Program-made: the position numbers and the translations under genes | Shown: piece by piece, positions 14,734 to 54,468 of the stretch | Layout of the letters: each line of letters starts with the position of its first letter | Numbering within the stretch: position 1 is the stretch's first letter | Notes under the pieces: generated by a model | What the model was told of the DNA's origin: nothing | Seen by the model: only the letters and a program-made list of their open reading frames with translations | The model's database searches: none | Virus record (IMG/VR): IMGVR_UViG_3300022868_000009 | Location: 62,001 to 126,000 of that record | Direction: 5' to 3' (one strand) | DNA: 64,000 bases

Positions 14734-15426
14734 TTAATTAATATCTTCTTTTTTAATACCAAATCTATTACTTAATCTTAATTCAAAAAACTTAGCATCT
14801 ATAGGATAATATTTGTGATTTGAAACATACAACTCATCCATTTTCCCTCTGTGTTCTGGAATATCTGGATGTTCATGTTTAATTATAACTTCATCAATAA
14901 AAGTTTGTCTTTTAAATCTACTTGCAACTCTTGTAAACTCATCATCAGAATAAAAGCTCTTATAACCTGGATGATAAATATATCCAAATCTATCGTAATA
15001 TTTCTTACCTAATATACATAAGGTATTAAGATCTCTTCTGTTTCCATCAAAAAACCATAAAACACCATCGGTGTCAGGATAATATTTCTTCATATTATCT
15101 CTGATTTTTGTATCATAACCTTGCATTTTTGGCATCATATCATCGGAAGCTAATAAAACAATATCCCAATCATCTTCAAAATCGTTCATATCAGCATTTA
15201 TAGCTTCTATTTTAGTCTTTGAAAAACCAATAAATATATCGACATTTTCGCATATTCCCTCAATTCTATCTAAAACTTTATCATTATTCATAGTTTTATC
15301 ATCATCATCAATTGAAATAAGAAAATGTGTATTTTCTTTATCATCCAATAAATCGAGATATTTTTGAAATGAATCAAAAAATTTCTTAGGTCTATTTCTG
15401 GTTGGGAATTTAATTAATAATTTCAT
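14734..15426 (-). CDS. GT-A fold glycosyltransferase
   Basis: KFPTRNRP, LASDDM, DDEFT, IKHEHP. Confidence 0.65.
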   Translation of the reverse strand: MKLLIKFPTRNRPKKFFDSFQKYLDLLDDKENTHFLISIDDDDKTMNNDKVLDRIEGICENVDIFIGFSKTKIEAINADMNDFEDDWDIVLLASDDMMPKMQGYDTKIRDNMKKYYPDTDGVLWFFDGNRRDLNTLCILGKKYYDRFGYIYHPGYKSFYSDDEFTRVASRFKRQTFIDEVIIKHEHPDIPEHRGKMDELYVSNHKYYPIDAKFFELRLSNRFGIKKEDIN

Positions 15427-16135
15427 TTTTTATTTTTATTTTTATAAAATCTATAATAGACATAGGTGAAAAATGATCGTATGAATAACTTGCACCAAAA
15501 TCACTATCGCCAAATTTTGGATCATAATATAATTTTACACCGTTTGTTAGTCTTGTATCTATTTTTAATATAATCATATTATTTTTATCTAAATTAAATC
15601 TACTAATTAAATCATTCACATAAAACATCGAAGATTCTAAATTATCAAAAACATAGATTCTATCTGGATGTTTTTCTATTTTATTTAATGAATTTGGATA
15701 AACTCCATTTTTATTTATTTTATCCAAAAATTTCTTTTCTGTTACGTGAAATAAGTAAATAGGAATACCTTTTAATTCACTATCAAATTTTTTATTTAAT
15801 TCTATATTAATATATTTATAATCACCAAACCATTCATAATTATTTGGTAAATCTTTACCATTTTCACCAGTATCTAATTTCCAATATGAAGTATTATAAC
15901 CAGAAACATTTAAAATTGATTTAATATAATCAATTAAATCTTCAGTAACATTATTTCTCAGTATTTTTATTTTAAATGAAAAAGAATCAAAAGAAATTTC
16001 AAAATTTTCACGTTTTAAAATACCCGCCAAATCTTCATAATCCCAACTACTAATTAAACCTTCTTTAATAAGAGAATTATTAAATTCGTCAATCATATCT
16101 CTTTGAAAGATCTTTCTATAATTTAAAATTTTCAT
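15410..16135 (-). CDS. Hypothetical protein with C-terminal ADP-ribosyltransferase/Tpt1-like HxT domain
   Basis: YLFHVT...INKNGVYP...HPDRIY...YYDP. Confidence 0.5.
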   Translation of the reverse strand: MKILNYRKIFQRDMIDEFNNSLIKEGLISSWDYEDLAGILKRENFEISFDSFSFKIKILRNNVTEDLIDYIKSILNVSGYNTSYWKLDTGENGKDLPNNYEWFGDYKYINIELNKKFDSELKGIPIYLFHVTEKKFLDKINKNGVYPNSLNKIEKHPDRIYVFDNLESSMFYVNDLISRFNLDKNNMIILKIDTRLTNGVKLYYDPKFGDSDFGASYSYDHFSPMSIIDFIKIKIKNEIIN

Positions 16136-17051
16136 TTTTATTTTCAATTAATTTCTCAAAGATTTTTAAAGAAACTTTATTACCAATATCTTCATTATAT
16201 GATATATAACCACATAATCGTTCATATATTTCATTGTTTTTAACATCTTCAATAATATCATCTAAAATATCATTCACATATTCTATAAATTCTTGGCTTT
16301 TTTGTTTAAAAAAATTATTCCAATTACTATAATATTTAATTAAATCACCATCAAATTGATCACCAATAGATTCACTGAATTCTTTAGTAAATTCTAAAAT
16401 ATCTGGTTTTTTAATAAATTCTAAATAATCAAAATTTTGTAATTTTGTTAAAGCTTCATATACAAATGACTTTTTAAATATTTCAAATAATTTATCTTTA
16501 TCTATAATATTAATATATCTATACATTTCATATAACATATTATGTCTAGTAATTAACTCATGTTCTAATGATAAATATACCAACTCGACAAATTCAGGGC
16601 ATTTATTTTTAAATTTAGAAATTGTCATAGATTTTACAAATTCTTGAATTTCAACATCACCAGAAACTGTATATATATCATATATATGTCTAATTTCATG
16701 TGATATAATAGACATTAAATAATCTATATCTATTTTATCATCAACAATTTTTACAGGTATAATAACTGGTTTTTCAGGTTCAGTTAATATATCATATATA
16801 TTTATATTGGAATAATATGGTTCTTTATTTCCTTTTTGGTAATTAATAACAATATCTATATTAAAGGAATCTATTTGATAATTATTATTAAAAAAATTGT
16901 CACCGTTATTAATTATATCTTTTCTTATTAATGAATATATTTTTTTAAGTAAAACTGGAAAGCTTTTATCTTTAAAATCTTCAAATATTTGACTATTTTC
17001 ATCTATAAATTGGTTCCATTTTTTAATAGATTGTTTTTTATTCAATTTCAT
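16116..17051 (-). CDS. Hypothetical protein with HExxH metallopeptidase-like motif
   Basis: IISHEIRHIYD followed by a downstream Glu. Confidence 0.45.
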   Translation of the reverse strand: MKLNKKQSIKKWNQFIDENSQIFEDFKDKSFPVLLKKIYSLIRKDIINNGDNFFNNNYQIDSFNIDIVINYQKGNKEPYYSNINIYDILTEPEKPVIIPVKIVDDKIDIDYLMSIISHEIRHIYDIYTVSGDVEIQEFVKSMTISKFKNKCPEFVELVYLSLEHELITRHNMLYEMYRYINIIDKDKLFEIFKKSFVYEALTKLQNFDYLEFIKKPDILEFTKEFSESIGDQFDGDLIKYYSNWNNFFKQKSQEFIEYVNDILDDIIEDVKNNEIYERLCGYISYNEDIGNKVSLKIFEKLIENKNENFKL

Positions 17052-17722
17052 TTATAATTTTTAAAAAATCAGGATTTATATGATTATAAGAATAGAAACC
17101 ATCTGATCTAGGATCTTCATATAACTCCAAATTATTTATATTAATTTCATAAATAATATATTTATTAGATTCATCATTTAACTTATCATTTAATCTATTT
17201 TTAGATAAAATATTTTGAGCATCATTAATATCAATAGAAAAATACAATCGACCTGGTCCAATCACCTTTTTCGAAAAAAGAAGGACACAAACCTTTCTTT
17301 TTAATTTTTCCAACATTTTCAATATTTGTAACATGGTACAACTTATTTGGTGTATATTGTAATTTCTTATCAAACCTAGATTCAAAAAACAATTTAATTT
17401 TATCATTTTTATTAGATTCTACTTCATAAGACTTAAAATCCTTCCAAGGAAAGATTCTAGATATATTTTCGCGTTCCAATTCAAAATAACTCAAATAAAA
17501 CCCCAAAACATTATATACGTGGAATAAATATTCCAAATCATTTTCAGTCAATAAAACATCATATGATAATATAAAAGTATTGTTATTATAATCAAATTCA
17601 ACAATACACCAATAATTTAGTTTACTAGATTCTCTTTCTATGATATTTTTACATTTTGATAATTCGTGAGTTTTTATCAATCCTTCATTAATCATCAACA
17701 CACAATCCTTATACTTTAACAT
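17038..17722 (-). pseudogene. Paralogue of 15410-16135 (HxT ART/Tpt1-like), split by a frameshift at a T6 run
   Basis: LYHVT...KKGLCPS in ORF 17231-17722; GPGRLYFS...LYEDPRS in overlapping ORF 17038-17406; junction at 17274-17279. Confidence 0.65.
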
Positions 17723-17813
17723 TTTTTGTCGATTATTTTAAAAATACTTTTTCTTTTTTATATATAATAAAAAATCAACATCCAGTTTGGAAAATCTATT
17801 TAATGAAAATGAT

Positions 17814-18917
17814 ATGAGTAAAAAATTAACTATAGAAGATATAAGAAATAAAAGTGATAATATACACAAAACAAAATATATAATAAAAGACCAATCATTT
17901 GAAAATAATAAATCTAAAATTGAAATTAAATGCGTTGAATGTGGTTATATATTTTTTCAACAAATCAACAACCACATAAATAGAGGAGATGGTTGTCCCA
18001 AATGTTATGGTAAAAATAAAAAAACAATAAATGAAATAAGAGATCTTAGTAAAAAAATTCATGGAAATATTTATGAAATACCAGAACAAAAATATATAAA
18101 CATGAAATCTAAAATACAAATTTTATGTAAAAAATGTAATACTTATTTTTCTCAATCATCTAATAATCACATTTACCAAAAACAAGGTTGTGTATTATGT
18201 AATGGTAATAATAAATTATCTTTACAAGATATTGTAAAAAAAGATACACAAAACAACAAAGAAAAATTTGAAATACCTGAACAAGAAATAAAAAACACTA
18301 GTCAAAAAATTAAAATTTATTGTAATGATTGCAAATCATATTTTTACAGAAATATAAATTCACATATAAATAGAAAATCAAAATATTGTCCTAATTGTTC
18401 TCCTGTACAGAAATTGACATTAAAAAAAATAAGAGAAAAAAGTCTACTTTTACATAAAGGAAAATATATAATACCTGATCAAACATTTGTAAACAATACT
18501 TCATTCATAAAAATATATTGCAAAAAATGTAAACAAATATATAAACAAAAAATAATGGTTCACTTAGATAATAGAATTAAAGGATGTAATAATTGTAAAT
18601 GTTCTAAAGGTGAAATTACAATATCAAACATATTAAAAAACAATAAAATAGATTTCATAACACAAAAAAGATTTAAAAATTGTAGATATAAATTACCTTT
18701 ACCGTTTGATTTTTATTTAACAGAAAAAAATTTATGCATTGAATATGATGGTGAATTACATTATATTTCAAAAGATTATTTTGGTGGTGATGAAAAACTA
18801 AAAGAAACACAAAGAAATGATAAAATAAAAACAGAATATTGCGAAAAAAATAAAATAAAATTATTAAGAATTAAATATGATGAAAATATCATCGAAAAAT
18901 TAAAAGAGATAATGTGA
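17814..18917 (+). CDS. Free-standing homing endonuclease: CxxC repeats plus C-terminal DUF559/Vsr-like nuclease
   Basis: Repeated CxxC...H...GCPxC units; PFDFYL...CIEYDGELHY...DKIK...LLRIKY. Confidence 0.8.
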   Translation: MSKKLTIEDIRNKSDNIHKTKYIIKDQSFENNKSKIEIKCVECGYIFFQQINNHINRGDGCPKCYGKNKKTINEIRDLSKKIHGNIYEIPEQKYINMKSKIQILCKKCNTYFSQSSNNHIYQKQGCVLCNGNNKLSLQDIVKKDTQNNKEKFEIPEQEIKNTSQKIKIYCNDCKSYFYRNINSHINRKSKYCPNCSPVQKLTLKKIREKSLLLHKGKYIIPDQTFVNNTSFIKIYCKKCKQIYKQKIMVHLDNRIKGCNNCKCSKGEITISNILKNNKIDFITQKRFKNCRYKLPLPFDFYLTEKNLCIEYDGELHYISKDYFGGDEKLKETQRNDKIKTEYCEKNKIKLLRIKYDENIIEKLKEIM

Positions 18918-19600
18918 AAATACTAAAAAACTATAATTCATTTATTTTTGAACAATTAACGCCAACAAACACAGAAATGATTGAATTCACATCAAAAGAA
19001 ATTAAAGAACTATTTGTAGATACTGATATATTAGAAAGTATAATAACAAGTGAGAATAGTTTATTAAAATCAATTAATGCAGAAGAAGTTAATTTTTTCA
19101 AAACATTTAGTCTTGATGTAGATTCATTTGATAATCTAAACAGTATTGATGAATTATATGAAGATGAAGAATTCAATAAAAAATTGGTATCACTTAAATA
19201 TAAGAAAACAAATCTAGAAGAAACTGAAGAATCAGAAACATTTATAGATAAAACAGTTGATATAAAGTTTTTCTTAATACATAAAGAAGAACAATCTGAA
19301 TTAGAAAAACCAGAATATATTATTTACCAATCTAAAAAAAGAGGAGAATTTAAATGGGAAAATATCAAATGTTATAAAGTAAATGAAGACATGAGAAATT
19401 TTTACGACAAACTTACTTCTAAGACAGTTGAAATATCTAAAGGAGAGAAAAAATATATCTATAACACATCTAATGGAGGTGTTGATTGGGTATTACAAAA
19501 CGTGGATGATGAAGACAAAACCTTCAAAAGAGACATGGAAAATAATGATATAAAAGCTATTTTAGTAGATGAAGAAATATCAATTACAATAGTTGCATAA
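18914..19600 (+). CDS. Hypothetical phage protein
   Basis: 228 aa ORF with tag-like N-terminus MKILKNYNSFIFE. Confidence 0.6.
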   Translation: MKILKNYNSFIFEQLTPTNTEMIEFTSKEIKELFVDTDILESIITSENSLLKSINAEEVNFFKTFSLDVDSFDNLNSIDELYEDEEFNKKLVSLKYKKTNLEETEESETFIDKTVDIKFFLIHKEEQSELEKPEYIIYQSKKRGEFKWENIKCYKVNEDMRNFYDKLTSKTVEISKGEKKYIYNTSNGGVDWVLQNVDDEDKTFKRDMENNDIKAILVDEEISITIVA

Positions 19601-19615: not shown

Positions 19616-19873
19616 ATGAAAATACTTAAATTTAAACAATTCGAAAGTAATACTAATTCAACAGATGATAAAGATTTCAATGAAAATATTACAGGTAATC
19701 TTGATCAAGATTTTAATTTAATCATTAATTATATAAATGATAATGATAATTATGAAAAATTTTTATCTTGTTTAACAACATATATAAAAAATCACCCAGG
19801 AATAACAACTGATAGCCGTTGGTTGGAAATTACCAATTTATGGTTTAATAAATATATTTTAAATAAAAAATAA
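19616..19873 (+). CDS. Hypothetical protein (MKILKFKQFES tag)
   Basis: ORF; first 32 nt identical to next gene. Confidence 0.6.
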   Translation: MKILKFKQFESNTNSTDDKDFNENITGNLDQDFNLIINYINDNDNYEKFLSCLTTYIKNHPGITTDSRWLEITNLWFNKYILNKK

Positions 19874-19881
19874 AACAAATT

Positions 19882-20280
19882 ATGAAAATACTTAAATTTA
19901 AACAATTCGAAAGCGAGACTTTCTATAATACTGACTCAACAGAATATGATACACAAGAAGAATACAAAGATGAAAAGAAAGTCCCAAATTATGATGATTA
20001 TATAAATAATAAAATAACTGAAAAAGATTTTCCTAATATTGACTCTACAGTAAAAGATATGCACCTTAACGATAAAATTACACTAAATGATTTATCAATA
20101 TTAGATAATTATATTAATAACACAAAAGATTATCTTGAAACAAATTTTGTTCTTTTTAGATTATATATTGAACATGATGAATTAACTATGGATTCAACTT
20201 TAAAAGAAACATGGCTAAAAATGGCTAAAAGATGGTACGAAAAATTAGATAAAAAATATTTTGGTATAAATTATCAATAA
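19882..20280 (+). CDS. Hypothetical protein (MKILKFKQFES tag)
   Basis: ORF; paralogous start with 19616. Confidence 0.6.
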   Translation: MKILKFKQFESETFYNTDSTEYDTQEEYKDEKKVPNYDDYINNKITEKDFPNIDSTVKDMHLNDKITLNDLSILDNYINNTKDYLETNFVLFRLYIEHDELTMDSTLKETWLKMAKRWYEKLDKKYFGINYQ

Positions 20281-20636: not shown

Positions 20637-21089
20637 TTAACCATTCAATTCTCTTTCAGTATCTCTTTCAATATCCCTATTTTTAATAGATTCTTTCTTT
20701 TGAAATAATTTTTTACCTTTAGCCAATGCAATTTCTACTTTAGCTAAACCTTTATCATTAATAAATAATCTTGTTGGTACAATTGTTAACCCTTTTTCAC
20801 TAACACCCTTTTTGAGTTTCTTCAATTGTTTCTTAGTTAATAACAATTTTCTATCACGTTTTGGTTCATGATTATTAATAGTACCCATTTCATATTCAGC
20901 AATATGAAGACTTTTTAAATACAATCCATCTTCTTTAAAAATGCAAAATGAATCTGTAAAAGAAACATTACCATTTCTAATAGATTTAATTTCAGTACCT
21001 AATAATATCATACCAGCTACATATGTATTTATCCACTCATATAAGTATGAGGCTTTTTTATATTTTATATTTATATCTTTATTTTGCAT
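20637..21089 (-). CDS. smpB: SsrA-binding protein SmpB
   Basis: AGMILLGTEIKSIR, NHEPKRDRKLLL, GLTIVP, KVEIALAKGKK, IKNRD. Confidence 0.95.
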   Translation of the reverse strand: MQNKDINIKYKKASYLYEWINTYVAGMILLGTEIKSIRNGNVSFTDSFCIFKEDGLYLKSLHIAEYEMGTINNHEPKRDRKLLLTKKQLKKLKKGVSEKGLTIVPTRLFINDKGLAKVEIALAKGKKLFQKKESIKNRDIERDTERELNG

Positions 21090-21142: not shown

Positions 21143-21856
21143 ATGATCAAAAGTTTTAAAAATTATCTTCTTATAAAAGAGTCAAGTCAATATTCAAAAA
21201 TGATTGATTTCACTCTTGTAAAACTTGAATACAAAAAAGAAGAAATAATTAATACTTGTCTAGAAGCTATTGAAACAAAGCCATATTGTATTTGTATACT
21301 ACCAAAATACATAGATTTAGTTAAAAATTTAGTTGATGGTAAAGGAATTAAAATTGCAACTGTAATTGATTTTCCAGAAGGAAATGGAACATATACAGAA
21401 AAAATACGTCAAACAAAACAAGCAATTGATAAAGGGGTTGATGAATTAGAAATGGTAATTGATTATAATAAGATTCAAAAACTAGAAAACTTACCAGAAG
21501 AACAATATGATAAACTTTATGAAACAATAAAGAAACCTGTTAAAGAATTTGGTAATTTATGTATAAAAAATAATATAACTTCAAAAATTATAATTGAAAC
21601 AGGCATATTAACATTAGATCAAATTAAAATTGCTTTAAACATATTAATTGATTGTGATATTGATTATGTTATGACTTCAACTGGATTTGCTGAAACTGGG
21701 GCGGAAGAAAAAAAGGTTAAATTTATAAATGATATAATACCTCATAATTCTAAACTTAAAATTAAAGTGTCAGGTGGGATAAGAGAATCCAATGATATTA
21801 AAAAGTTCTACTCTAAAGGTGCAAGAAGATTTGGCACATCAGCTATAATTGGATAA
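21143..21856 (+). CDS. deoC: Deoxyribose-phosphate aldolase (paralogue 1)
   Basis: IDFTL, ATVIDFPEG, DELEMVID, KIIIETG, TSTGF, IKVSGGIR, RFGTS; note MTSTG where KTSTG is usual. Confidence 0.85.
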   Translation: MIKSFKNYLLIKESSQYSKMIDFTLVKLEYKKEEIINTCLEAIETKPYCICILPKYIDLVKNLVDGKGIKIATVIDFPEGNGTYTEKIRQTKQAIDKGVDELEMVIDYNKIQKLENLPEEQYDKLYETIKKPVKEFGNLCIKNNITSKIIIETGILTLDQIKIALNILIDCDIDYVMTSTGFAETGAEEKKVKFINDIIPHNSKLKIKVSGGIRESNDIKKFYSKGARRFGTSAIIG

Positions 21857-22090: not shown

Positions 22091-23020
22091 TTAAGTTATT
22101 ATATTCATCATAAACAAAATATATATTCCATTAGATAGGCTTCTTAAATCTAATTCTGAATCTCCATTTAAAACTAATTGTCCTGTTGAATTATAAAGAT
22201 TTGTTTTTACATTATTATCAGAAACTTTTACATAATCAGTTGTAGGGTTAGGATATACTGTTACATTTGATTCGATATTTTCAACTTCTATTTTTTCTGT
22301 AGTTAAATCATAAAGTGAAATAATTTCAGATTCATTAAGAACTTTATCATAGATTGTAATATCATCTAAAATACCATTAAGAAAGTTTGCATTACCAATT
22401 TTAAATATCTCGATATCATTGATTGTTGTACCAGTAAAAAGACCATCACTAGCACTAGTACTGTAAGATTCATGTAAAATTGTATTACCATCGAATAAAT
22501 ATAAATTATAAACATTATCAGAAGAAGAACAAGTAATAGAATAAAAGTACCATGAATCATTTTCTGAAAGTGTTATTTCACAGGATTTTCCTCCATATTG
22601 ATATCCATATGATTGAAGTCTTAACTTATTATGGTCGACAATCAATTCAATAAATTTGTAAGGACCAATACATCTCAATTTAAATACATTACCTTCAGTT
22701 GAATTGTCAATTTTAATCCATCCCGTTATACTAATAGAATCTAAATCCAAATTATTTAAGGTATATGGATCAATATCTATATCACCACCATTAAAAGAAT
22801 AAGCATCGTTATTTAACCCACTGTGTCCTACATCAGGTGTAATATTACCAAGTAAAATATCATCCATATCACCAACAAACCAATTTGATGTTTCATCCCA
22901 TACATATCCTTCTATGATATCGGTTTCGTAATTAAATTTCCATTCTGCAATGGGGTTAAGTTGTGAAATGCTTACCAAACAGAATATTGTCATTATCAAA
23001 GTTAAAAAGATTTTTTTCAT
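22091..23020 (-). CDS. Secreted LamG/concanavalin-like protein with T9SS C-terminal sorting domain (C-terminus frameshifted)
   Basis: Signal peptide; SITGWIK...GILDDITIYDKVLNESEI; VYPNPTTD...YNSTGQLV...LSNGIYIL; final KIIKQ* lies in another frame ending 22062. Confidence 0.75.
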   Translation of the reverse strand: MKKIFLTLIMTIFCLVSISQLNPIAEWKFNYETDIIEGYVWDETSNWFVGDMDDILLGNITPDVGHSGLNNDAYSFNGGDIDIDPYTLNNLDLDSISITGWIKIDNSTEGNVFKLRCIGPYKFIELIVDHNKLRLQSYGYQYGGKSCEITLSENDSWYFYSITCSSSDNVYNLYLFDGNTILHESYSTSASDGLFTGTTINDIEIFKIGNANFLNGILDDITIYDKVLNESEIISLYDLTTEKIEVENIESNVTVYPNPTTDYVKVSDNNVKTNLYNSTGQLVLNGDSELDLRSLSNGIYILFMMNIIT

Positions 23021-23149: not shown

Positions 23150-23365
23150 ATGAATATAAAAAAGTTAGAACTTAGAAATTTTAAGTCTTTCGGTAACGCA
23201 ACTCAGGTTTTAGAATTTGATGATGATGGAAAACTTATTTTTCTCTCAGGAAAAAATGGATCGGGAAAGTGCGTTTCTCCTGATACTATATTAGAAATAG
23301 AAGTCGATGATGATATTAAACTTCAATTGATTGAATTTTTAGAAAAAAGAAATTTGCCGTTGTAG
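23150..23365 (+). CDS. gp46/SbcC ATPase N-extein (40 aa, to Walker A GKNGSGK) fused to 31-aa N-intein
   Basis: MNIKKLELRNFKSFGN...SGKNGSGK then CVSPDT (intein block A). Confidence 0.9.
   Translation: MNIKKLELRNFKSFGNATQVLEFDDDGKLIFLSGKNGSGKCVSPDTILEIEVDDDIKLQLIEFLEKRNLPL
23270..23362 (+). mobile_element. Split intein N-fragment (short, atypical)
   Basis: Cys1 start CVSPDTILEI directly after the Walker A lysine; ORF stops 31 aa later. Confidence 0.85.
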
Positions 23366-23385
23366 CCTAGTTAATATATAAAAAT

Positions 23386-47031: not shown

Positions 47032-47559
47032 ATGGATTATTTGAAAACATATACAGAAAAACAAGAAGACAAACCAACCTATAAAATATATGTAGATTTA
47101 GATGGTGTGTTATGTGATTTTAATGGAAGATTTAAGAAAGATATAGATCAAATAGGACCAGAAAAATACATAAAAAAATATGGAGTAACTAAAATGTGGC
47201 AAGAAATCGAAAAACGTGGTATAGAACATTGGAGTAACATGGATTGGATGTCTGATGGTAAAAAATTATGGAAATTTATTACAGAAAATTTTAACGATAT
47301 AGAAATATTAACTGGTTCACCTTGGGGTAAAGCTGGTCAATATGCTCACAAAGGTAAAGATATTTGGTGTAAAAGAGAACTAGGTAATATTAAAGTCAAT
47401 CATAAATCAAGTAAACAAAAATATAAATTTGCTTCTGAAAATCACATATTAATTGATGATATGAAAAGAAATACTGATATGTGGAAAGATGCTGATGGTA
47501 TTGCAATAAATCATAAATCTACCAATAAAACAATTAAAATATTAAAAAAATATATTTAA
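47032..47559 (+). CDS. HAD-family 5'(3')-deoxyribonucleotidase-like protein
   Basis: IYVDLDGVLCDF, ILTGSP, K..W, ILIDD, W..ADGIAI. Confidence 0.8.
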   Translation: MDYLKTYTEKQEDKPTYKIYVDLDGVLCDFNGRFKKDIDQIGPEKYIKKYGVTKMWQEIEKRGIEHWSNMDWMSDGKKLWKFITENFNDIEILTGSPWGKAGQYAHKGKDIWCKRELGNIKVNHKSSKQKYKFASENHILIDDMKRNTDMWKDADGIAINHKSTNKTIKILKKYI

Positions 47560-49205: not shown

Positions 49206-49535
49206 ATGAAATTCTTTTACCTAATATTACTATTTTTACTATCCCTCACAATTTCCGCACAAAAAATTTACAAAGTTGATTATAAATATGATGCAGATAT
49301 AAAAGTATATGTTGCTGATTATAAATATGATGCAGATTTGATTGTTTATATCGTAGATTATAAATATGATGCAAATAAAGATGGTTTATGGTATTTCGTA
49401 AATTATAAATATGATGCAGATAAGACAATTTATTTTGTAGATTATAAATACGATGCAAATTTAATAATTTACTTCTGTGATTATAAGTATGATGTAGGTT
49501 GGAAAAATAAATCTAAAATACATTTATTAAGATAA
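49206..49535 (+). CDS. Secreted repeat protein (DUF6150-like)
   Basis: Signal peptide then six VDYKYDAD-type repeats. Confidence 0.65.
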   Translation: MKFFYLILLFLLSLTISAQKIYKVDYKYDADIKVYVADYKYDADLIVYIVDYKYDANKDGLWYFVNYKYDADKTIYFVDYKYDANLIIYFCDYKYDVGWKNKSKIHLLR

Positions 49536-49547
49536 ATATATAATTTA

Positions 49548-49751
49548 ATGAAATGGGATAAATTTATTGATGATACTTTCCAACTTAAAGAATGGGATTA
49601 TATAGATCCTAAAATAATAAATTACATTAAAGATAATTTTTTGACACTTAATAAAGATAATGTTAAAAAGTTACATCTTCCCAAAAAATTAACACACCAT
49701 ATTTCAATTAGATTAGAATATTTAGAAGAATTTTCTAATATTAGACCTTAA
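49548..49751 (+). CDS. Hypothetical protein
   Basis: Short ORF after AATATATA motif. Confidence 0.4.
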   Translation: MKWDKFIDDTFQLKEWDYIDPKIINYIKDNFLTLNKDNVKKLHLPKKLTHHISIRLEYLEEFSNIRP

Positions 49752-50119
49752 TTAATATTCTCAAAGAATTCTTTAACAGGTAATAATATATAACGTGTGC
49801 GCGCGCATGCGTATATAAAAAAATTTTTCAAAAGATTAAAATTTTTAAAAATTTTATTTCATTAATATTATCTTTAACGGTAATACTTATTTTCCTAAGA
49901 ATAAAGAATTTTCAACTTATTGAATTTTTTAGTATAATTAGTATAATCTTTTAATTTTAGAAAAAAGTGACTTTTTAAGTCAAATATATAATTTTCACAC
50001 TTTTATAAATTTTTAAAATTTTTAAACTTTTTAAAATTTTGAAAGTACAAGAAAATAGATTACGAAAAAATAATATTTTTTTAAAGATTTTTCGAAATCA
50101 AAACGTTCTTTAAAATATT

Positions 50120-51050
50120 GTAAAATATAGTCTGTGCTTGGGCAGACGTTCATCTTCGGATGGAGCAGATAAAACATCGTAAGGTGTCGAAAGAGAGGAA
50201 GGTCACTTATTCTCGCCAATAGTCTTCGGATTATGGTCAATCTAAGCAAGTCTCATTTTTGTCTTGACCAACAAGACAGCCTCAATAGAAAGGGGATAAG
50301 ATGAAACAACGTGAGTAACGATCTTTGGTAAGAATAAGATGGCTCAATTGCCCGCAAGGGGAACAAAAGTTATCAAATATAGAATGGGGACATTCCAATA
50401 TCGTTTAATCCACTCATTAAGTGTTCGTTGATAGATAAGAGATAGAATAGTAGTTCGAATGTGGAAAGTTAGAGCATTATTCAGTTTCAAAGGTGTTGAA
50501 AGATGTCTTAACAAACGGCACAGTAAGTCCTCCGGGCTGAAACGCATACGAAGGGTCGTATTTTGTAAGGTGAAACTTATGAATCGGTGGACAGGCACTT
50601 TGTGGTGATATCATTTTTTATTAGCTCACAATGGTAGAGCAGTAGTATTCTAACTAAAGGTAGATGGTTCAATTCCATCATAAAAAAAGCAAAGTCCCTG
50701 TCCGTCTGTTAAGTAAAGGTGCTTAAAACTTTACACTTCGGTGAATAAAGTGGATTCAAAGCTCGCAAGGTAGAGAATCTTTGATACAGTAGCCTCAACT
50801 TTTAACCCTAGCAGGTTATTAACGCCACGATAGTGGTGAGTGTACGCAAAATATCGAGTAACTTAATAGTACTAGTGATGTAACCACATAAAAAGTTACA
50901 GTACAGCTGGTGTACATAGTTGCCTTTCGAGGGATTATGTGGACAATTCAGGAACGAAGAATAGCAACTCTTTGATAATCTGAAGAAAGCAAAACATATA
51001 ATAAACTGTGTGTTTTACCAGTATGACAGTTTTTAGTCTCAAAATTGTTT
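50120..51050 (+). ncRNA. Large ornate ncRNA, GOLLD-like (boundaries approximate)
   Basis: No credible ORF; GC-richer than flanks; UUCG/GCAA hairpins at 50151-50162, 50219-50234, 50351-50360, 50734-50743, 50923-50932; embedded tRNA-like element; terminal stem with AGUCUC loop at 51026-51048; next to tRNA genes. Confidence 0.6.
50615..50687 (+). pseudogene. tRNA-like element inside the large ncRNA (all-AU acceptor stem, 6-nt anticodon loop)
   Basis: TTTTTAT/ATAAAAA acceptor, GCTC/GAGC D-stem, GATGG-TTCAATT-CCATC T-arm. Confidence 0.75.
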
Positions 51051-51450
51051 CTCTATCAAGATAAAAACCTTGACGTGGTGATAGAGCTTTAAACTAATAT
51101 TTATCAAATGTGAAAAAAGTAGTAGAAATTAAAAGACGCAACACGCAGCCCGTTCTCTGCGCTACTTCACAAAAATGTGAACGATAAAAATCTTCACATT
51201 TAAATACACCAAGAATAACACCATCACTGTAGCCCTAAAGGAGTGATGTTGTCGCATAAAAACGATTAGTGTTAGTGTGTGTTTGAGAAGACGACGGGGG
51301 ATTTCACAAAAGTAACATGAATCAAGTAGTGTGAAATAAGAAATTCCTCCAAGTTTTCTCGGAAAATTTTTTTATGCAAGAAATAATTTGTATATTGTCA
51401 AAAATAGAGAATAAATATTTAATATATAAAAAATAGTAAAAACAGAAACA

Positions 51451-51537
51451 ATGAATAATACTTTTAAACATAATAGTTCATCTTTTCATAAGTGGTTTAG
51501 CCGCTTCGGATCGGGAATGTTATGCCTTAAAAGTTAA
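51451..51537 (+). CDS. Putative attenuator leader peptide 1 (MNNTFKHNSSSFHKWFSRFGSGMLCLKS)
   Basis: 28-codon ORF ~30 nt after TAATATATA motif; overlaps antiterminator strand; F/H/W codons match downstream tRNAs. Confidence 0.7.
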   Translation: MNNTFKHNSSSFHKWFSRFGSGMLCLKS

Positions 51538-51566
51538 GATTAAAAAATATTAATCAACAAAGGGAC

Positions 51567-51604
51567 AAACTCGATTCTAACAAGATTCGGGTTTTTTGTT
51601 TTTT
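51567..51604 (+). terminator. Intrinsic terminator upstream of tRNA-His/Trp/Phe (attenuator)
   Basis: AAACTCGATTCT-AACA-AGATTCGGGTTT then T-tract. Confidence 0.8.
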
Positions 51605-51626
51605 ATAAACGTTCTTAAAAATATAT

Positions 51627-51702
51627 GGTGGTTATAGTGTTAGTGGTAGCACGGCAGGTTGTGGTTCTGTTAGGATGGATTCAAATTCCATTAATCACCC
51701 CA
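51627..51702 (+). tRNA. tRNA-His(GTG), encoded G-1 and CCA
   Basis: Cloverleaf; GCAGG-TTGTGGT-TCTGT anticodon arm. Confidence 0.92.
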
Positions 51703-51712
51703 AATTTAACAC

Positions 51713-51783
51713 AGGTCTATAGTGTAACGGTAGCATAAGTGATTCCAAACCACTTGGTCCGGGTTCAAATCCTGGTAGGCCTG
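51713..51783 (+). tRNA. tRNA-Trp(CCA)
   Basis: AGGTCTA/TAGGCCT acceptor; TTCCAAA loop; CCGGG-TTCAAAT-CCTGG. Confidence 0.92.
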
Positions 51784-51852
51784 CGAGAAGTTTAAATATG
51801 GTTAAATGAAGGATGGTTAAAAGGTAGAAAAATGAAATATTAATACAAATTT

Positions 51853-51925
51853 GGAACCGTGGTGTAGGTGGTCTGCACGATACTCTGAAGAAGTATAGGT
51901 ACCCGTTCAACTCGGGTCGGTTCCA
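51853..51925 (+). tRNA. tRNA-Phe(GAA)
   Basis: GGAACCG/CGGTTCC acceptor; ATACT-CTGAAGA-AGTAT. Confidence 0.9.
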
Positions 51926-52002
51926 CTTTAAACTTTTAAATTTTAATATATATTAATGTGAAGAAAGAACCAGTTTTAATGAAAAATAATAAAAATTAAC
52001 AA

Positions 52003-52749
52003 ATGAAAAAATATACACAATTTAGTAAATCTTTAGAAAAAATCAATCAAAATATGGAATTATTTGAAAAAGCTATCGATCAAAATCAAAAAGAAAAAAT
52101 AGATAGATATATTAATGCAAACAATTACAAAAAAGTTCTATCAGAACTAAAACAAATTATTTTTAATTTAAAAAAAGAAATTAAAAATTCCAATTTTGAT
52201 GATTTCATTTATAAACAGAACAATAAAGATATAGAAATAATATATAATCCGACTATTCGTGGTATTTTAACCTATTTAGATGGTAAAAGAGTAGAATTTG
52301 AATATGGAAAAGAAGAGAATCAACAAAAAATCTTAAACACTATCTATATTGATGGTGAAAGAGACCCATTTTTAGATATAACTATTCAACCACCATTTAA
52401 TCAGATACATATTAATAATGGTTTGCCAGTTTTTATGAAAGGTCTAGGATTAGGTAAAAAAGTTTACAAAAAACTAATTAAAGATTTTGGTTATCTTTCT
52501 TCTTTTAAAGGAATAAAACCTTCTATTGAAAGTGATTTGGTTTGGGATACTTTAGCTGATGATAGAGAATTGTTCACTTTTGTGAATGATAACAATATCA
52601 TTTGTTTTTGGAATGAAGTAGATTATGATATTATAATTATTAAATTGAAAGAATTTTACAAAATAAAAGGACAAAAAATCTTTGATAACGATTTTAAAAA
52701 GTTATATAACTTAACTGATGAAAAAATAGAACAAATAATTAATATATAA
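52003..52749 (+). CDS. Hypothetical protein, possible GNAT-like motif
   Basis: MKGLGLGKKVY resembles acetyl-CoA-binding motif A. Confidence 0.5.
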   Translation: MKKYTQFSKSLEKINQNMELFEKAIDQNQKEKIDRYINANNYKKVLSELKQIIFNLKKEIKNSNFDDFIYKQNNKDIEIIYNPTIRGILTYLDGKRVEFEYGKEENQQKILNTIYIDGERDPFLDITIQPPFNQIHINNGLPVFMKGLGLGKKVYKKLIKDFGYLSSFKGIKPSIESDLVWDTLADDRELFTFVNDNNIICFWNEVDYDIIIIKLKEFYKIKGQKIFDNDFKKLYNLTDEKIEQIINI

Positions 52750-52767
52750 AGAAAATCAATTTTAAAC

Positions 52768-53016
52768 ATGAAAATTAAAAGATATAATGAATCATTAATT
52801 GATAATGATAATAACACTAGAGAAGATTTCAATGAAGAAATTGATGATCTAATATCAGAATTAAAGATAAGATATAATAATTTTAATAATTTAATTGATT
52901 CATACAAAATAATAGAAAAAAGTAAAACAGAAGAATGGGAAAAAGTTAGAAATGAACTAAGAGGCGCATTTGATGGTTTTAAAAATGAATTAATACAAAA
53001 AATTAAAAAATTTTAA
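52768..53016 (+). CDS. Hypothetical protein (MKIKRYNES tag)
   Basis: ORF after TAATATATA motif. Confidence 0.55.
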   Translation: MKIKRYNESLIDNDNNTREDFNEEIDDLISELKIRYNNFNNLIDSYKIIEKSKTEEWEKVRNELRGAFDGFKNELIQKIKKF

Positions 53017-53019
53017 ATA

Positions 53020-53094
53020 ATGATTATAATTAACATAAATAGTAAATCGAAAAAGAATAGTCGTCTGAAAACGGCTCGGAATTGTATTACCTAA
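53020..53094 (+). CDS. Putative attenuator leader peptide 2 (MIIININSKSKKNSRLKTARNCIT)
   Basis: 24-codon ORF; AGT AAA TCG AAA AAG AAT AGT cluster matches downstream Lys/Ser tRNAs; contains 1:2 hairpin and antiterminator strand. Confidence 0.7.
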   Translation: MIIININSKSKKNSRLKTARNCIT

Positions 53095-53116
53095 ATTTTT
53101 AGGTACAAAGAATTAC

Positions 53117-53146
53117 AAACCGAGTCTGAAAAGATTCGGTTTTTTT
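53117..53146 (+). terminator. Intrinsic terminator 2 nt before tRNA-Lys (attenuator)
   Basis: AAACCGAGTCT-GAAA-AGATTCGGTTT plus T-tract. Confidence 0.85.
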
Positions 53147-53148
53147 AT

Positions 53149-53226
53149 TGGCCATTAGCTCAGTAGGTTTAGAGCATCTGCCTTTTAAGCAGAGAGTCCA
53201 GGGTTCGATCCCCTGATGGCCAACCA
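53149..53226 (+). tRNA. tRNA-Lys(TTT) with encoded CCA
   Basis: TGGCCAT/ATGGCCA; TCTGC-CTTTTAA-GCAGA; CAGGG-TTCGATC-CCCTG. Confidence 0.95.
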
Positions 53227-53228
53227 AT

Positions 53229-53301
53229 GGATCTGTAGCTCAGTTGGTAGAGCTTCTGCCTTTTAAGCAGAAAGTCCAGGGTTCGAGTCCGACTAGGTCC
53301 A
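53229..53301 (+). tRNA. tRNA-Lys(TTT), second copy with mispaired T-stem
   Basis: GGATCTG/TAGGTCC; same anticodon arm; T-stem CAGGG/CCGAC pairs only 2 bp. Confidence 0.7.
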
Positions 53302-53305
53302 CTAA

Positions 53306-53420
53306 GGCTTATAACAAATAGGTTGTATTTATAGAGCATTTGTCGGGTTACCGCATGTCACTAAAATGTATATTTTAAGAGTTACTAGAGATATATGAGG
53401 TTCGAATCCTTAATAAGCCA
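53306..53420 (+). ncRNA. tRNA-like RNA (acceptor stem and T-arm intact, enlarged non-canonical centre)
   Basis: GGCTTAT/ATAAGCC-A; TGAGG-TTCGAAT-CCTTA; 115 nt. Confidence 0.65.
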
Positions 53421-53424
53421 CTAT

Positions 53425-53508
53425 GGAAAGCGTCCGGTTGGACGAGGGGCTACTCTTGAAAAGTAGTAATGGGTTACACCATTAGGGGTTCGAATCCCTT
53501 GCTTTCCG
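53425..53508 (+). tRNA. tRNA-Ser(TGA)
   Basis: CTACT-CTTGAAA-AGTAG; long variable arm; G discriminator. Confidence 0.93.
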
Positions 53509-53512
53509 CTAT

Positions 53513-53600
53513 GGAAGAGTACCCAAGTTGGTGAAGGGGCTGGTTTGCTAAACCAGTAGGTCTGAAATACGGCGCGTGGGTTCGAGCCCCACTTCTTCCG
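53513..53600 (+). tRNA. tRNA-Ser(GCT)
   Basis: CTGGT-TTGCTAA-ACCAG; long variable arm; G discriminator. Confidence 0.93.
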
Positions 53601-53648
53601 CAATTAGGTTTGAAACTCAGTTGGTGACCTACTAAGAAAGATATTTCA

Positions 53649-53831
53649 TTAAACTTCTTGCCAATGGTTAACACCATTTTTATCAGTTTGTATTTCCCAC
53701 ATATTACCATCATTACCTTTCATTCTAGTTCCTTCATCATGCCATGTTGCACTATCTGTAGGTCCTTTTCTACTTTCTGAATGTCTAACTGAAGCAGCAC
53801 TTGCTTCTTTAAAAGTTTTTAAATGTTTCAT
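53649..53831 (-). CDS. Small tagged protein (MKHLKTFKE) with KGNDGNMW motif
   Basis: 60 aa ORF in tagged-gene array. Confidence 0.6.
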   Translation of the reverse strand: MKHLKTFKEASAASVRHSESRKGPTDSATWHDEGTRMKGNDGNMWEIQTDKNGVNHWQEV

Positions 53832-53832
53832 A

Positions 53833-54081
53833 TTATTTAGTCATATATTTTATACCATGTTTTCGTAGTTTTTTAACTACTTTGTCATAGTTCACTTCAT
53901 TTTCATATCCGTATAATATATCCGGGATGAGATCGTCAAGGTGTTCTTCAACCTCTGAAAGAAGTTTAGCACCAGAATAATCATGTCTCATGTCATAATA
54001 TACGTCATCTAAAAATTCTTCAAGTTCTATTTTCATATCACTTAATTTAAGTGATTCATTAAAAGTTTTTAAATGTCTCAT
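53833..54081 (-). CDS. Small tagged protein (MRHLKTFNES)
   Basis: ORF. Confidence 0.6.
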   Translation of the reverse strand: MRHLKTFNESLKLSDMKIELEEFLDDVYYDMRHDYSGAKLLSEVEEHLDDLIPDILYGYENEVNYDKVVKKLRKHGIKYMTK

Positions 54082-54102
54082 TATTTATTTATTTATTTAT
54101 TT

Positions 54103-54468
54103 TTATAGTAATCCTAATTTATTTGATTGTAGATATTCATCTATTGTAACTCCAATATTTTTTATATACCAATCTTCTATTGTAATTGGTTTATAAAATG
54201 CATTATTATTTACATTAACATCAAAATCCAATATTCCAGAATTTGTCTTATATATATATAAAGATACAATTTCACATTTACTTTCTACTTGATCTCCCCA
54301 AGCACAAGAAACTTCATCTTCTATAATTTCGGTTAATTGTTCATATATTGGTAATTCATAATATTTTTCTATTTGTTTAATGGTAACTTCTAAATTATCA
54401 TTATTCTTAATATCAGTTATTGTAATATTAAAATGTTTATTTTCTAAATATGTCTTTAGGTATTTCAC
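54103..54468 (-). CDS. Tagged protein (MKYLKTYLE start, NKLGLL end)
   Basis: GTG-start ORF; shared terminal motifs. Confidence 0.6.
   Translation of the reverse strand: MKYLKTYLENKHFNITITDIKNNDNLEVTIKQIEKYYELPIYEQLTEIIEDEVSCAWGDQVESKCEIVSLYIYKTNSGILDFDVNVNNNAFYKPITIEDWYIKNIGVTIDEYLQSNKLGLL

Follow-up and report, generated by a model that had tools for sequence, protein, structure and literature searches.

Capsid-targeting-like N-terminal tags on unrelated proteins of a T4-related megaphage of Bacteroidota

Background

In phage T4, the internal proteins IPI, IPII, IPIII and Alt carry a capsid targeting sequence (CTS), a 10-19-residue N-terminal peptide found on otherwise unrelated proteins, which is removed by the prohead protease gp21 after Glu. 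T4 IPII and IPIII both start MKTYQEFIAE↓A (here and below, an arrow marks the known or presumed cleavage site at the end of the tag). Targeting depends on residues 4 and 7 (Tyr4 and Phe7 in IPIII), processing depends on residues 8 and 10, and Asp at position 10 blocks processing (PMC9026906). The T4 gp23 site is FGSFLTE↓A, and the scaffold protein gp22 holds many [IL]AE motifs. In the giant phages phiKZ, 201phi2-1 and SPN3US, many internal head and ejection proteins are likewise processed after Glu at short motifs by a gp21-like protease; paralogues can share identical N-terminal peptides, and propeptides can hold several cleavage sites (PMC5694885, PMC9026906). Those propeptides are mostly longer than 100 residues, use S/A-x-E motifs and have no single portable consensus. 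A more distant parallel is provided by encapsulins, in which short terminal peptides dock diverse cargo enzymes onto the inside of an HK97-fold shell, although these peptides are not known to be removed by a maturation protease.

We examined a 64,000-nucleotide stretch (the window; positions 62,001 to 126,000 of IMG/VR record IMGVR_UViG_3300022868_000009) for which a preliminary description, made from sequence alone, had reported about twenty unrelated ORFs between 15410 and 54468 sharing a capsid-targeting-like N-terminal tag, and had inferred a large injected cargo set including enzymes. The window is part of a 344.6-kb fragment (CheckV estimate 48% complete) of a Mahaphage-type megaphage. 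A search of the literature found no paper linking megaphages to capsid-targeting sequences.

Occurrence and specificity of the tags

The shared N-termini are present in the sequence as had been described, including two internal copies and a stretch of 32 identical nucleotides at 19616 and 19882. A tight tag, M[KR][HY]LKT[YF]x(0-1)E (class A), starts about 40 of the 493 ORFs of the record but matches only 1-2 of 91,000 internal positions. A PSSM of this tag scored at least 10 bits at 34-40 ORF starts and at only 1-8 of 90,980 internal positions, counted with and without the Met column. A second, looser tag, [FYW]xx[FYW][ILV]xE within the first ~12 residues (class B), starts about 22 more ORFs; it begins within the first 10 residues 21 times against 48 internal hits, which is about 8-fold enrichment per position. 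Once the tags were removed, the 61 tagged proteins fell into 57 BLAST clusters, indicating that their bodies are unrelated. In the range 15410-54468 we counted 8 class A ORFs, 5 strict class B ORFs and about 8-10 looser ones among 53 ORFs, whereas the adjacent, equally AT-rich glycosyltransferase island (window 1-15400, 20 ORFs) has none. Several of the looser examples of the preliminary description (MKILKFKQFES, MKIKRYNES and the DeoC at 21149) fit only a relaxed pattern and cannot be judged individually.

A C-terminal motif, ...E[ASG]xK[LM]GLL-COOH, which the preliminary description had missed, was found on 61 ORFs and is carried by about half of the class A proteins. Its pattern of a small residue, a hydrophobic residue, Gly and a hydrophobic residue is loosely reminiscent of encapsulin cargo-loading peptides.

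Tagged proteins within the window

Eight ORFs of the range carry class A tags. The ORF at 35218-35817 (-) starts MRYLKTYSE↓N and encodes a leucine-rich-repeat protein (LRR_4, E=7e-28) that ends ...AKKMGLY; in its AF2 model residues 1-6 have pLDDT<50 while the whole-model mean is 92.9, and paralogues in related contigs keep both ends. Two 127-aa proteins of unknown family are encoded at 41540-41923 (+), with tag MKHLKTFE↓GFFSE, C-terminus ...EGKKLGLL and no Pfam or PHROG hit, and at 41938-42321 (+), with tag MKHLKTYE↓NFFDSE. A 147-aa protein at 44748-45191 (-) starts MRYLKTYE↓G and has a C-terminal variant, ...AKSIGLI. At 47032-47559 (+) the tag MDYLKTYTE↓K is placed about 15 residues in front of a 5'(3')-deoxyribonucleotidase domain (HAD, NT5C-like; NT5C, E=1.8e-4, below the Pfam cut-off; phrog_2643, E=4.9e-21). 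The remaining three are a 60-aa ORF at 53649-53831 (-) with MKHLKTFKE↓A, an 82-aa ORF at 53833-54081 (-) with MRHLKTFNE↓S, and a 121-aa ORF at 54103-54468 (-) with MKYLKTYLE↓N, a GTG start and C-terminus ...QSNKLGLL.

Among the class B tags, MKKYGEFINE↓S at 45441-46358 (-) is identical to MKTYQEFIAE of T4 IPII/IPIII at 7 of 10 positions, including residues 4, 7, 8 and 10. It sits on a 305-aa protein with a predicted flavodoxin-like, weakly nucleoside-deoxyribosyltransferase-like fold, and a second conserved xNE↓S lies at about residue 48. The tag is kept in 21 homologues at 37-45% identity, with E10 and E48 conserved in at least 90%, and residues 1-11 have pLDDT<50 in the AF2 model. A paralogue at 42975-43913 (-), which aligns with it at 38% identity, has the loose class B tag MKIKRFDNFYQLNE↓S. 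Further class B tags are MITNFKNFIIE↓N on a 181-aa protein of unknown family at 46416-46961 (+), MELKKFKNFLTE↓E on a 120-aa protein at 35914-36276 (-), and MNKFIEFIIE↓K on a 232-aa protein at 28537-29235 (+), where the residues that follow look hydrophobic. At 16116-17051 (-) the motif lies at residues 12-18 (MKLNKKQSIKKWNQFIDE↓N) of a 311-aa protein without a Pfam hit. A class B-like tag, MIKKFSNLIE↓S, starts a 193-aa protein at 29969-30550 (-), also without a Pfam hit, whose homologue in a 249-kb relative carries a class A tag (MRYLKTFES) instead; the alignment (E=1e-22) starts just after both tags, indicating that homologous proteins can carry either tag class.

The looser tags include MKNYKKFINSINE↓N at 43929-44732 (-), about 20 residues in front of a DeoC aldolase domain (E=1.8e-16; the domain starts at residue 31, profile position 13), and a weak tag, MIKSFKNYLLIKE↓S, in front of a second DeoC domain (E=6.7e-8) at 21149-21856 (+), for which the start codon is inferred. 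Two adjacent ORFs at 19616-20280 (+) (19616-19873 and 19882-20280) both start MKILKFKQFE↓S; their first 32 nucleotides are identical and the rest is unrelated. Loose tags were also seen on a 182-aa protein at 42387-42935 (-) (MIKIKRYSELNE↓K), an 82-aa ORF at 52768-53016 (+) (MKIKRYNE↓S) and a 228-aa ORF with a GTG start at 18914-19600 (+) (MKILKNYNSFIFE↓Q). The internal copies lie at 36267-38139 (-) in two adjacent, otherwise unrelated proteins (36267-37235, with RFNNFLNE, and 37237-38139, with RFDYFLNE), which share only a 22-residue stretch, ...NEN[KR]L[YL]RF[ND]xFLNE↓, at the same distance from the start (residues about 67-88). It is possible that these are long propeptides; they, and the second xNE site at about residue 48 of the 45441-46358 protein, resemble the multi-site arrangement in the phiKZ-like phages.

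Of the enzyme identities in the preliminary description, the two DeoC proteins, the LRR protein and the 5'-deoxyribonucleotidase were confirmed, while the NDT-like assignment rests on weak fold matches only and the proposed cysteine hydrolase has no family hit.

Properties of the tag peptide

Selection acts on the peptide, since synonymous codons in the tag are at least as varied as genome-wide (for example AAG 7/21 against 13% expected, and Leu codons with p=0.9). The tag ends in Glu and almost never in Asp. For class B the N-terminal E:D ratio is 22:3 here and 32:3 in the 735-kb Mahaphage LR756501, against about 1:1 internally (Fisher p=0.011 and 7.7e-6), and for class A 30 of 34 tags have Glu at position 8 or 9 and none has Asp only. 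The motif hydrophobic-N-E-[NSAG] is 6.5-fold enriched at residues 4-16, while the Asp version is depleted. In sequence pattern, class B in the T4 register has Y/F at position 4 and F/Y at position 7, and class A has Leu/Ile at 4 and Tyr/Phe at 7. At the presumed cleavage site class B reads [ILV]-x-E, whereas class A reads [YF]-x-E or T-[YF]-E, so that its P3 is aromatic rather than the Leu or Ile of T4; the corresponding sites in the capsid protein and scaffold of this clade read [MLIV]-N-E-N and Y-[ILV]-A-E. The tags are add-ons in front of complete domains, as the DeoC, NT5C, NUDIX, RNase H and PolyA_pol domains start 18-97 residues in, and low AF2 confidence (pLDDT<50) predicts the modelled tags to be floppy.

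Head genes and distribution in related phages

The phage has gp23-type capsid (Gp23, 85.5 bits), gp20-type portal and gp21-type protease genes, the last fused to a scaffold. The 811-aa protease-scaffold aligned to T4 gp21 with an hhalign probability of 91.6% (E=8.2e-7 over 140 columns), matching the invariant GEFDHP and VSSR, the catalytic His and Ser motifs, to T4's GELNHP and VSSR, although the Pfam peptidase S77 hit is below the gathering score (21.9-23.5 against 27 bits). The scaffold part holds 7-15 heptad-like Y[SA]EY[ILV]AE repeats, essentially the core of the T4 tag, which are conserved in the 59 non-identical full-length homologues among 80 related loci; a profile search of PDB sequences found only a designed coiled coil for the repeat region. 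The capsid-protein N-terminus, ...WMAEYAEMHQ[MLI]NEN..., is nearly invariant in 49 relatives at a position analogous to the T4 gp23 cleavage site, and the scaffold has an invariant VNEN. These are the same xNE↓N as the tag ends.

LR756501 has 32 class B tags in 400 kb (13.5-fold enriched), and the 249-kb relative, which has the same protease-scaffold, has about 14. The class A DNA pattern hit 64 IMG/VR loci, while in 596 Gb of prokaryote genomes it hit only 34 loci, which are one ferredoxin-like family, mis-binned phage contigs or chance. The Flavobacteriia phage pT24, which has a gp23-type capsid protein, shows no tag enrichment, so the tag does not come with every gp23-type head. A promoter-like motif of unknown timing, AATATATA[AG], which precedes the capsid and protease genes, precedes 44% of tagged against 21% of untagged genes (odds ratio 3.0, p=1.8e-4).

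Alternative explanations

The preliminary description had named AT-rich translation-start bias as a reading that would overturn its own. In this view the tag would be a preferred 5' coding sequence, possibly for nearly leaderless mRNAs, with no role as a peptide. All the tag codons are AT-rich, Lys is 3.4-fold enriched at position 2 in all ORFs, and many tagged and tag-like genes have AATATATA only 12-15 nt before the ATG. We reject this explanation as very unlikely, since synonymous sites vary while substitutions are conservative at the amino-acid level (K/R, H/Y, Y/F), and since selectivity for Glu over Asp cannot come from AT content, GAA and GAT being equally AT-rich. The tags are also absent from the glycosyltransferase island and from pT24 at 29% GC, are not a general feature of AT-rich bacterial genomes, and persist in relatives at 32-36% GC, and many tagged genes are translationally coupled (TAATG) and so are not leaderless. 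It also seems unlikely that the tags are merely cassette boundaries, that is, short conserved 5' ends which, together with the conserved 3' end of the upstream gene, act as recombination joints that shuffle small genes, with the peptide carried along without a function of its own. The identical 32 nucleotides at 19616 and 19882, the clustering of tagged genes in arrays and the many junctions at which ...KLGLL-stop overlaps ATG-MKYLKTY are consistent with this, and conserved CTS-coding ends flank the variable T-even internal-protein loci in a similar way. However, most tag copies differ at synonymous sites, leaving little uninterrupted identity for homologous recombination, and the tags are kept in protein families that have diverged to about 40% identity and across genomes of different GC content. 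Recombination does not explain the strict Glu or the match to the scaffold repeats and capsid-protein site, although it may well occur in addition, as a consequence of the conserved ends.

A somewhat less improbable, but still doubtful, alternative is that the peptide is functional but is read by something other than the prohead, such as an oligomerisation or docking helix for a cytoplasmic complex, or a regulated-turnover signal linked to the phage's own ClpS and SmpB genes, in which case the C-terminal ...KLGLL would be an ssrA-like degron. The phage encodes ClpS (window 55622-55903, E=5.7e-18) and SmpB (20637-21089, E=2.9e-50) next to the tagged clusters, several tagged proteins are metabolic or nucleic-acid enzymes that act in the cytoplasm, and the hydrophobic C-terminal ...GLL resembles C-terminal degrons. 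On the other hand, ClpS reads a free N-terminal Leu, Phe, Tyr or Trp and not Met-Lys, and no ClpP or S41 tail-specific protease was found in the 344 kb analysed. Nor does this reading explain the likeness of the tag to T4 CTS residues 4, 7, 8 and 10, to the scaffold repeat and to the capsid-protein maturation site, or its restriction to phages with this protease-scaffold.

Interpretation and conclusions

We consider it more likely than not that the shared N-termini are removable head-addressing peptides of the T4 CTS type, greatly expanded in a megaphage. In this model a short amphipathic N-terminal helix, with hydrophobic residues at positions 4 and 7, would let the protein co-assemble with the prohead core, which in this clade is the C-terminal scaffold part of the protease protein. 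After the shell closes, the gp21-type serine protease would cut after the Glu that ends the tag (...[YFIL]-N/x-E↓[N/S/A/G]), as well as cutting the scaffold and the capsid-protein propeptide, and the freed proteins would stay in the head with the DNA and probably enter the cell with it. Our analysis demonstrates the motif, its N-terminal specificity, its peptide-level selection, Glu specificity and modularity, the resemblance of the scaffold repeats to the tag, and the presence and conservation of T4-type head machinery with matching motifs, but binding to the core, sufficiency of the tag for packaging, cleavage and ejection are inferred from sequence alone, without virion data for this uncultured phage. 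The capsid-targeting interpretation of the preliminary description is partly supported and is the best explanation; every indirect test that we could apply fits it. Some features sit less easily with it: class A has Tyr or Phe rather than T4's Leu or Ile at P3; about 12% of ORFs would be head cargo, far more than in any studied phage; some tagged enzymes (RNase HI, a CCA-adding-type enzyme, DeoC) are not obvious cargo; and the model does not require the C-terminal motif.

Like the T4 CTS, the tags start MK, have hydrophobic or aromatic residues at positions 4 and 7, and end in hydrophobic-x-Glu followed by a small or polar residue, with an aromatic P3 in class A. Compared with T4, class B tags such as MKKYGEFINE↓S are near-copies of the known CTS, whereas what differs is the scale (about 60 tagged ORFs in half a genome against a handful), the dominant class A variant (MKYLKTYNE↓N), the joining of protease and scaffold in one polypeptide whose repeats look like the tag, the many enzymes among the putative cargo, and the C-terminal motif. 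Compared with phiKZ, 201phi2-1 and SPN3US, a short, sharply defined consensus is reused here on dozens of proteins. These findings suggest, although this is not yet proven, that the phage loads an unusually large protein cargo into its head. The putative cargo includes LRR proteins and nucleotide or nucleic-acid enzymes, namely DeoC, a 5'-nucleotidase, an NDT-like protein, NUDIX, RNase HI and a CCA/poly(A) nucleotidyltransferase, and it can be speculated that such a mix would suit pre-loaded host-takeover or counter-defence functions.

Genome context

The 344,634-bp IMG/VR virus record, of which the 64-kb window covers bases 62001-126000, is linear, has a GC content of 25%, and is estimated by CheckV to be 48% complete. 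IMG/VR also contains a near-identical 348-kb contig, IMGVR_UViG_3300023257_000007. It encodes a T4-type major capsid protein (Pfam Gp23, 85.5 bits), whose closest GenBank relatives are found in the 735-kb, 642-kb and 634-636-kb uncultured phages LR756501-4 and LR745206 (49-64% identity), followed by the Lak Prevotella megaphages. These large genomes form the 'Mahaphage' clade, which is predicted to infect Bacteroidetes (PMC7162821). A secreted lectin-like protein (Laminin_G_3) at 22091-23020 (-) in the window carries a type IX secretion C-terminal sorting domain (Por_Secre_tail), which fits a Bacteroidota host. All reading was done with translation table 11, under which coding density is 90%. 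A tRNA with anticodon CTA at 50614-50688 (+), labelled tRNA-Pyl by ARAGORN, would act as an amber suppressor and lies in a cluster of 8 tRNA genes, but TAG still ends 44 of 492 called ORFs, so recoding is not evident. A stretch of about 1.8 kb at 49750-51600 has raised GC (34% against 23-25%), with no convincing ORF and no Rfam family apart from one tRNA.

Other features of the window include an island of about 20 minus-strand genes at 1-15400 which, judged by eye from the ORF translations, look like glycosyltransferase, methyltransferase and sugar-nucleotide enzyme genes. At 23150-26576 (+) an SbcC/gp46-like ATPase appears to be split, as a 71-aa N-terminal P-loop piece ending ...GKNGSGKC VSPD... 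is followed by a 408-aa ORF and then a 655-aa ORF, which looks like an intein or homing-endonuclease insertion. Within 27073-29591 (+) the phage encodes a histidine kinase (HisKA and HATPase_c) and, immediately after it, a receiver-domain response regulator (28126-28494); judged from sequence alone, an ORF further downstream (29232-29591) also looks like a receiver domain. An apparent NAD salvage and synthesis cluster at 55986-59083 (+), read from the translations only, comprises a nicotinamide/nicotinate phosphoribosyltransferase-like ORF of 435 aa, a NUDIX-like ORF and a NadE-like ORF. A multicopy family of 525-603-aa proteins (DUF7487, with repeated EKYGVE motifs and a conserved C-terminal half) is scattered through the genome, at 31117-32694 (+), 33580-35226 (+) and 38168-39979 (-) in the window and at record positions 1788-3440, 8010-9752 and 130817-132418, including on both sides of the capsid and protease genes. 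These are probably mobile endonuclease-like genes.

Two classes of N-terminal tag

The preliminary description had claimed that about twenty unrelated ORFs within 15410-54468 of the window share a capsid-targeting-like N-terminal tag, and this observation was confirmed. Every start on which it rested was present at its coordinate, and the 32 identical nucleotides at 19616 and 19882 are exact. Two classes of tag were distinguished. A PSSM built from class A, M[KR][HY]LKT[YF]x(0-1)E, scored at least 10 bits at 34-40 of 493 ORF starts but at only 1-8 of 90,980 internal positions, counted with and without the Met column. Class B, [FYW]xx[FYW][ILV]xE, begins within the first ten residues 21 times, against 48 hits anywhere else, nine of which lie in one scaffold protein. 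Within 15410-54468 there are 8 class A ORFs, 5 strict class B ORFs and some 8-10 looser cases among 53 ORFs, whereas the neighbouring and equally AT-rich glycosyltransferase island (20 ORFs) has none. With the first 16 and last 10 residues removed, 61 tagged proteins fell into 57 BLAST clusters, so that the statement that unrelated ORFs share a tag is correct.

Constraint on the peptide rather than the nucleotide sequence

Within the tag, synonymous codons are used as in the rest of the genome or more evenly. Leu codons fit genome usage (p=0.9), AAG at position 5 is found in 7 of 21 cases against 13% expected, and TAC at position 3 in 4 of 14 against 10% expected. The replacements seen are K with R, H with Y and Y with F. 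The tag ends in Glu and almost never in Asp, although GAA and GAT are equally AT-rich. Class B-like N-terminal matches have an E:D ratio of 22:3 here and 32:3 in LR756501, against 36:25 and 29:33 internally (p=0.011 and 7.7e-6). Thirty of 34 class A tags have Glu at position 8 or 9 and none has Asp alone, while the other four have Glu a few residues later in an [LFI]xE context. The motif hydrophobic-N-E-[NSAG] is 6.5-fold enriched at residues 4-16 in both megaphages, while the Asp version is depleted. The class A DNA pattern occurs in 64 IMG/VR loci, nearly always at an ORF start, but in only 34 loci in 596 Gb of prokaryote genomes, and those are one orthologous ferredoxin-like family, a few mis-binned phage contigs of 21-23% GC, and chance hits. 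The AT-rich start-bias explanation, which had been named beforehand as the way in which the finding could be refuted, is therefore rejected.

The tag as a portable addition

Known domains begin well after the tag: at residue 31 in the DeoC protein at 43929-44732, at residue 30 in the DeoC protein at 21149-21856, at residue 19 in the NT5C-type deoxyribonucleotidase, at residue 22 in RNase HI, at residue 46 in the PolyA_pol (CCA-type nucleotidyltransferase) protein and at residue 97 in the NUDIX protein. Pfam searches gave nothing for most small tagged ORFs, and PHROGs gave no head-related annotation for any tagged protein. AlphaFold2 with family alignments gave pLDDT<50 for residues 1-11 of the 305-aa class B protein (45441-46358), and for residues 1-6 of the LRR protein (35218-35817), for which the whole-model mean was 92.9. 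A Foldseek search of the PDB with the 305-aa protein gave only weak nucleoside-deoxyribosyltransferase or flavodoxin-like matches (best E=0.014; NDT chains at probability up to 0.99, TM about 0.5), and the 'NDT-like' label of the preliminary description therefore stays tentative. The family of this protein (21 homologues, 37-45% identity) keeps the tag, with E10 conserved in at least 90% of members and a second xNE/S conserved at about residue 48 (here and below a slash marks the cleavage position, which is presumed in the megaphages). Homologues can carry either class: the protein at 29969-30550 starts MIKKFSNLIES, while its homologue in a 249-kb relative starts MRYLKTFES, and the alignment begins just after both tags (E=1e-22). 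Some LRR paralogues have MKYLKTY followed by an inserted ...MINE/I, which is class A joined to a canonical I-x-E site.

Resemblance to the head assembly proteins

The T4 internal proteins IPII and IPIII begin MKTYQEFIAE/A and IPI begins MKTFKEF..., as read from the T4 record. In T4, targeting depends mainly on residues 4 and 7, processing depends on residues 8 and 10, Asp at position 10 blocks processing, and gp21 cuts after [LI]-x-E (PMC9026906). The protein at 45441-46358 begins MKKYGEFINE/S, which has all four of those residues, and class A has Leu at position 4 and Tyr or Phe at position 7.

Next to the capsid gene, outside the window (record 5467-7902, minus strand), lies an 811-aa protein, a fusion of a gp21-type protease and a scaffold. 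Its first ~180 residues match T4 gp21 (hhalign against the T4 sequence, probability 91.6%, E=8e-7), with GEFDHP and VSSR aligned to the catalytic His and Ser motifs of T4, although the Pfam S77 hit on its own is below the cut-off, and a profile search of PDB sequences did not find T4 gp21. Residues 300-445 consist of tandem 14-residue repeats, NIxYSEYIAExLDK, of which the protein contains 11-12, and the repeat region also matches a designed coiled coil. IMG/VR holds 346 relatives of this fusion, and the 59 non-identical full-length ones among the 80 loci fetched have 7-15 Y[SA]EY[ILV]AE repeats. YSEYIAE is in essence the core of the T4 capsid-targeting sequence (CTS), YQEFIAE, and fits the class B pattern. 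The scaffold of T4 itself, gp22, is full of [IL]AE, and the gp23 maturation site is FGSFLTE/A. The capsid-protein N-terminus reads ...WMAEYAEMHQ[MLI]NEN... almost invariantly in 49 relatives and is followed by a variable Gly/Pro-rich linker, which places it analogously to the T4 gp23 site, and the scaffold has an invariant VNEN. The commonest tag endings, ...TYNE/N and ...F[IL]NE/[NSA], are thus the same tetrapeptide as the most conserved candidate cleavage sites of the capsid protein and the scaffold.

Distribution among related phages

In the first 400 kb of the 735-kb LR756501, the closest GenBank megaphage, no class A tags were found, but there were 32 class B tags (13.5-fold enriched), such as MIKTFDEFINES and MVKRYKQFINEG. 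Class A is therefore a lineage variant and not the ancestral form. In LR756501 a second short motif, DPYGEE[DN]W, recurs just after the tag or at the C-terminus of several tagged proteins (for example at 132880, 338419 and 86178), and is absent from the present genome. The 249-kb relative, with 36% GC and the same protease-scaffold and capsid motif, has about 14 tagged ORFs of both classes, and several other class A-bearing contigs have Gp23-type capsid proteins. A cultured relative with a virion proteome was sought, but Tenacibaculum phage pT24, which has a gp23-type capsid protein and a different scaffold, showed no tag enrichment and so cannot serve as a proxy.

Upstream sequences

A promoter-like AATATATA[AG], or (TT)AATATATA[AG], is the most enriched upstream word in the record (about 13-fold). 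It precedes the capsid gene, the protease gene and several very large ORFs, and it precedes 44% of tagged genes against 21% of untagged genes (odds ratio 3.0, p=1.8e-4). Two spacings are preferred, about 13 nt and about 28 nt; the word lies 25-33 nt upstream of the capsid gene (record 3566-5329) and of 45441-46358, and 12-15 nt upstream of many small genes, where the short spacing would give nearly leaderless mRNAs.

A C-terminal motif

A second motif, which the preliminary description did not record, was found at the other end of many proteins. Sixty-one of the 493 ORFs end in hydrophobic-hydrophobic-E-[ASG]-x-K-[LM]-G-L-[LMIFY]-COOH, and these fall into 47 BLAST clusters. The pattern K[LMI]G[LVI][LMYIF] is terminal 47 times and internal 12 times. 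About 20 of the 41 class A proteins carry the motif, including four in the window at 35218-35817 (-), 41540-41923 (+), 44748-45191 (-) and 54103-54468 (-), and large arrays of ~100-aa ORFs carry it at record 299-343 kb. The upstream stop often overlaps the ATG of the next tagged gene (TAATG). Since a Glu followed by a small residue sits eight residues from the end, it is possible that the motif is a C-terminal propeptide; T4 Alt and gp21 are processed at their C-termini (PMC9026906). Another class A-bearing lineage instead ends its proteins in ...K[YF]N[IL], and LR756501 (first 400 kb) has no such motif.

A dedicated reader for the C-terminal motif was sought, but no Peptidase_S41 and no ClpP were found in the 344 kb of the record. 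The phage does encode SmpB at 20637-21089 (-) (E=2.9e-50) and ClpS at 55622-55903 (+) (E=5.7e-18), although no tmRNA was found by ARAGORN anywhere in the window, or by Rfam in 49500-54000. It was also considered whether the N- and C-terminal motifs pack together into one fold, but the predicted LRR model shows a disordered N-terminal tag and a C-terminal helical cap that do not contact each other.

Interpretation

The best explanation of these results is a T4-type capsid-targeting propeptide system, expanded to about 60 proteins in the half-genome available, and the capsid-targeting interpretation of the preliminary description is to that extent partly supported. The analysis itself demonstrates the motif, its specificity, the constraint on the peptide and on its Glu, its modularity, and the matching motifs in a conserved gp21/gp22/gp23-type machinery, whereas docking to the scaffold core, cleavage after Glu, retention in the head and ejection are inferred. 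We consider this reading more likely than not, but no more than that. Points against it or left open are that class A has an aromatic residue at P3, the number of proposed cargo proteins is very large, some tagged enzymes are not obvious cargo, and the C-terminal motif is left unexplained. Among the alternatives, a functional N-terminal peptide read by something else is unlikely but the strongest of them, a role of the tags as recombination joints is less likely again, and translation initiation bias is very improbable.

The CTS principle has been known for T4, and propeptide-guided head proteins are known for phiKZ-like giants (PMC9026906, PMC5694885), but no paper connecting megaphages with capsid targeting was found in the literature searched. 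What appears to be new is the scale, the class A variant, the protease-scaffold fusion whose repeats resemble the tag core, and the possible second, C-terminal address. A bolder reading, which remains doubtful, is that megaphages of this clade use a two-ended addressing code, in which an N-terminal CTS-like tag mimics one scaffold repeat and a lineage-specific C-terminal tag (...E/[ASG]xK[LM]GLL here, ...KYNI in another lineage) marks the other end, both being bounded by Glu and clipped off by the prohead protease. Together they would load roughly 100 different proteins (about 20% of ORFs) into the head as an injected proteome, which would include nucleotide-degrading and RNA-repair enzymes pre-positioned against host defence signalling.

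The likeness to the scaffold repeat also suggests how a CTS could work, by joining the scaffold's own repeat packing, a point that has not been settled even for T4. In practice, a sharply defined tag of 9-10 residues with a matching protease could serve as a protein-packaging handle. If the tags do what their T4 counterpart does, their presence alone would allow the head cargo of uncultured megaphages to be read off the genome sequence, and would imply an injected proteome an order of magnitude more diverse than any so far described. This bears on the long-standing question of what phages with 0.3-0.7-Mb genomes do with their many unknown small genes, and how they survive the first minutes of infection.
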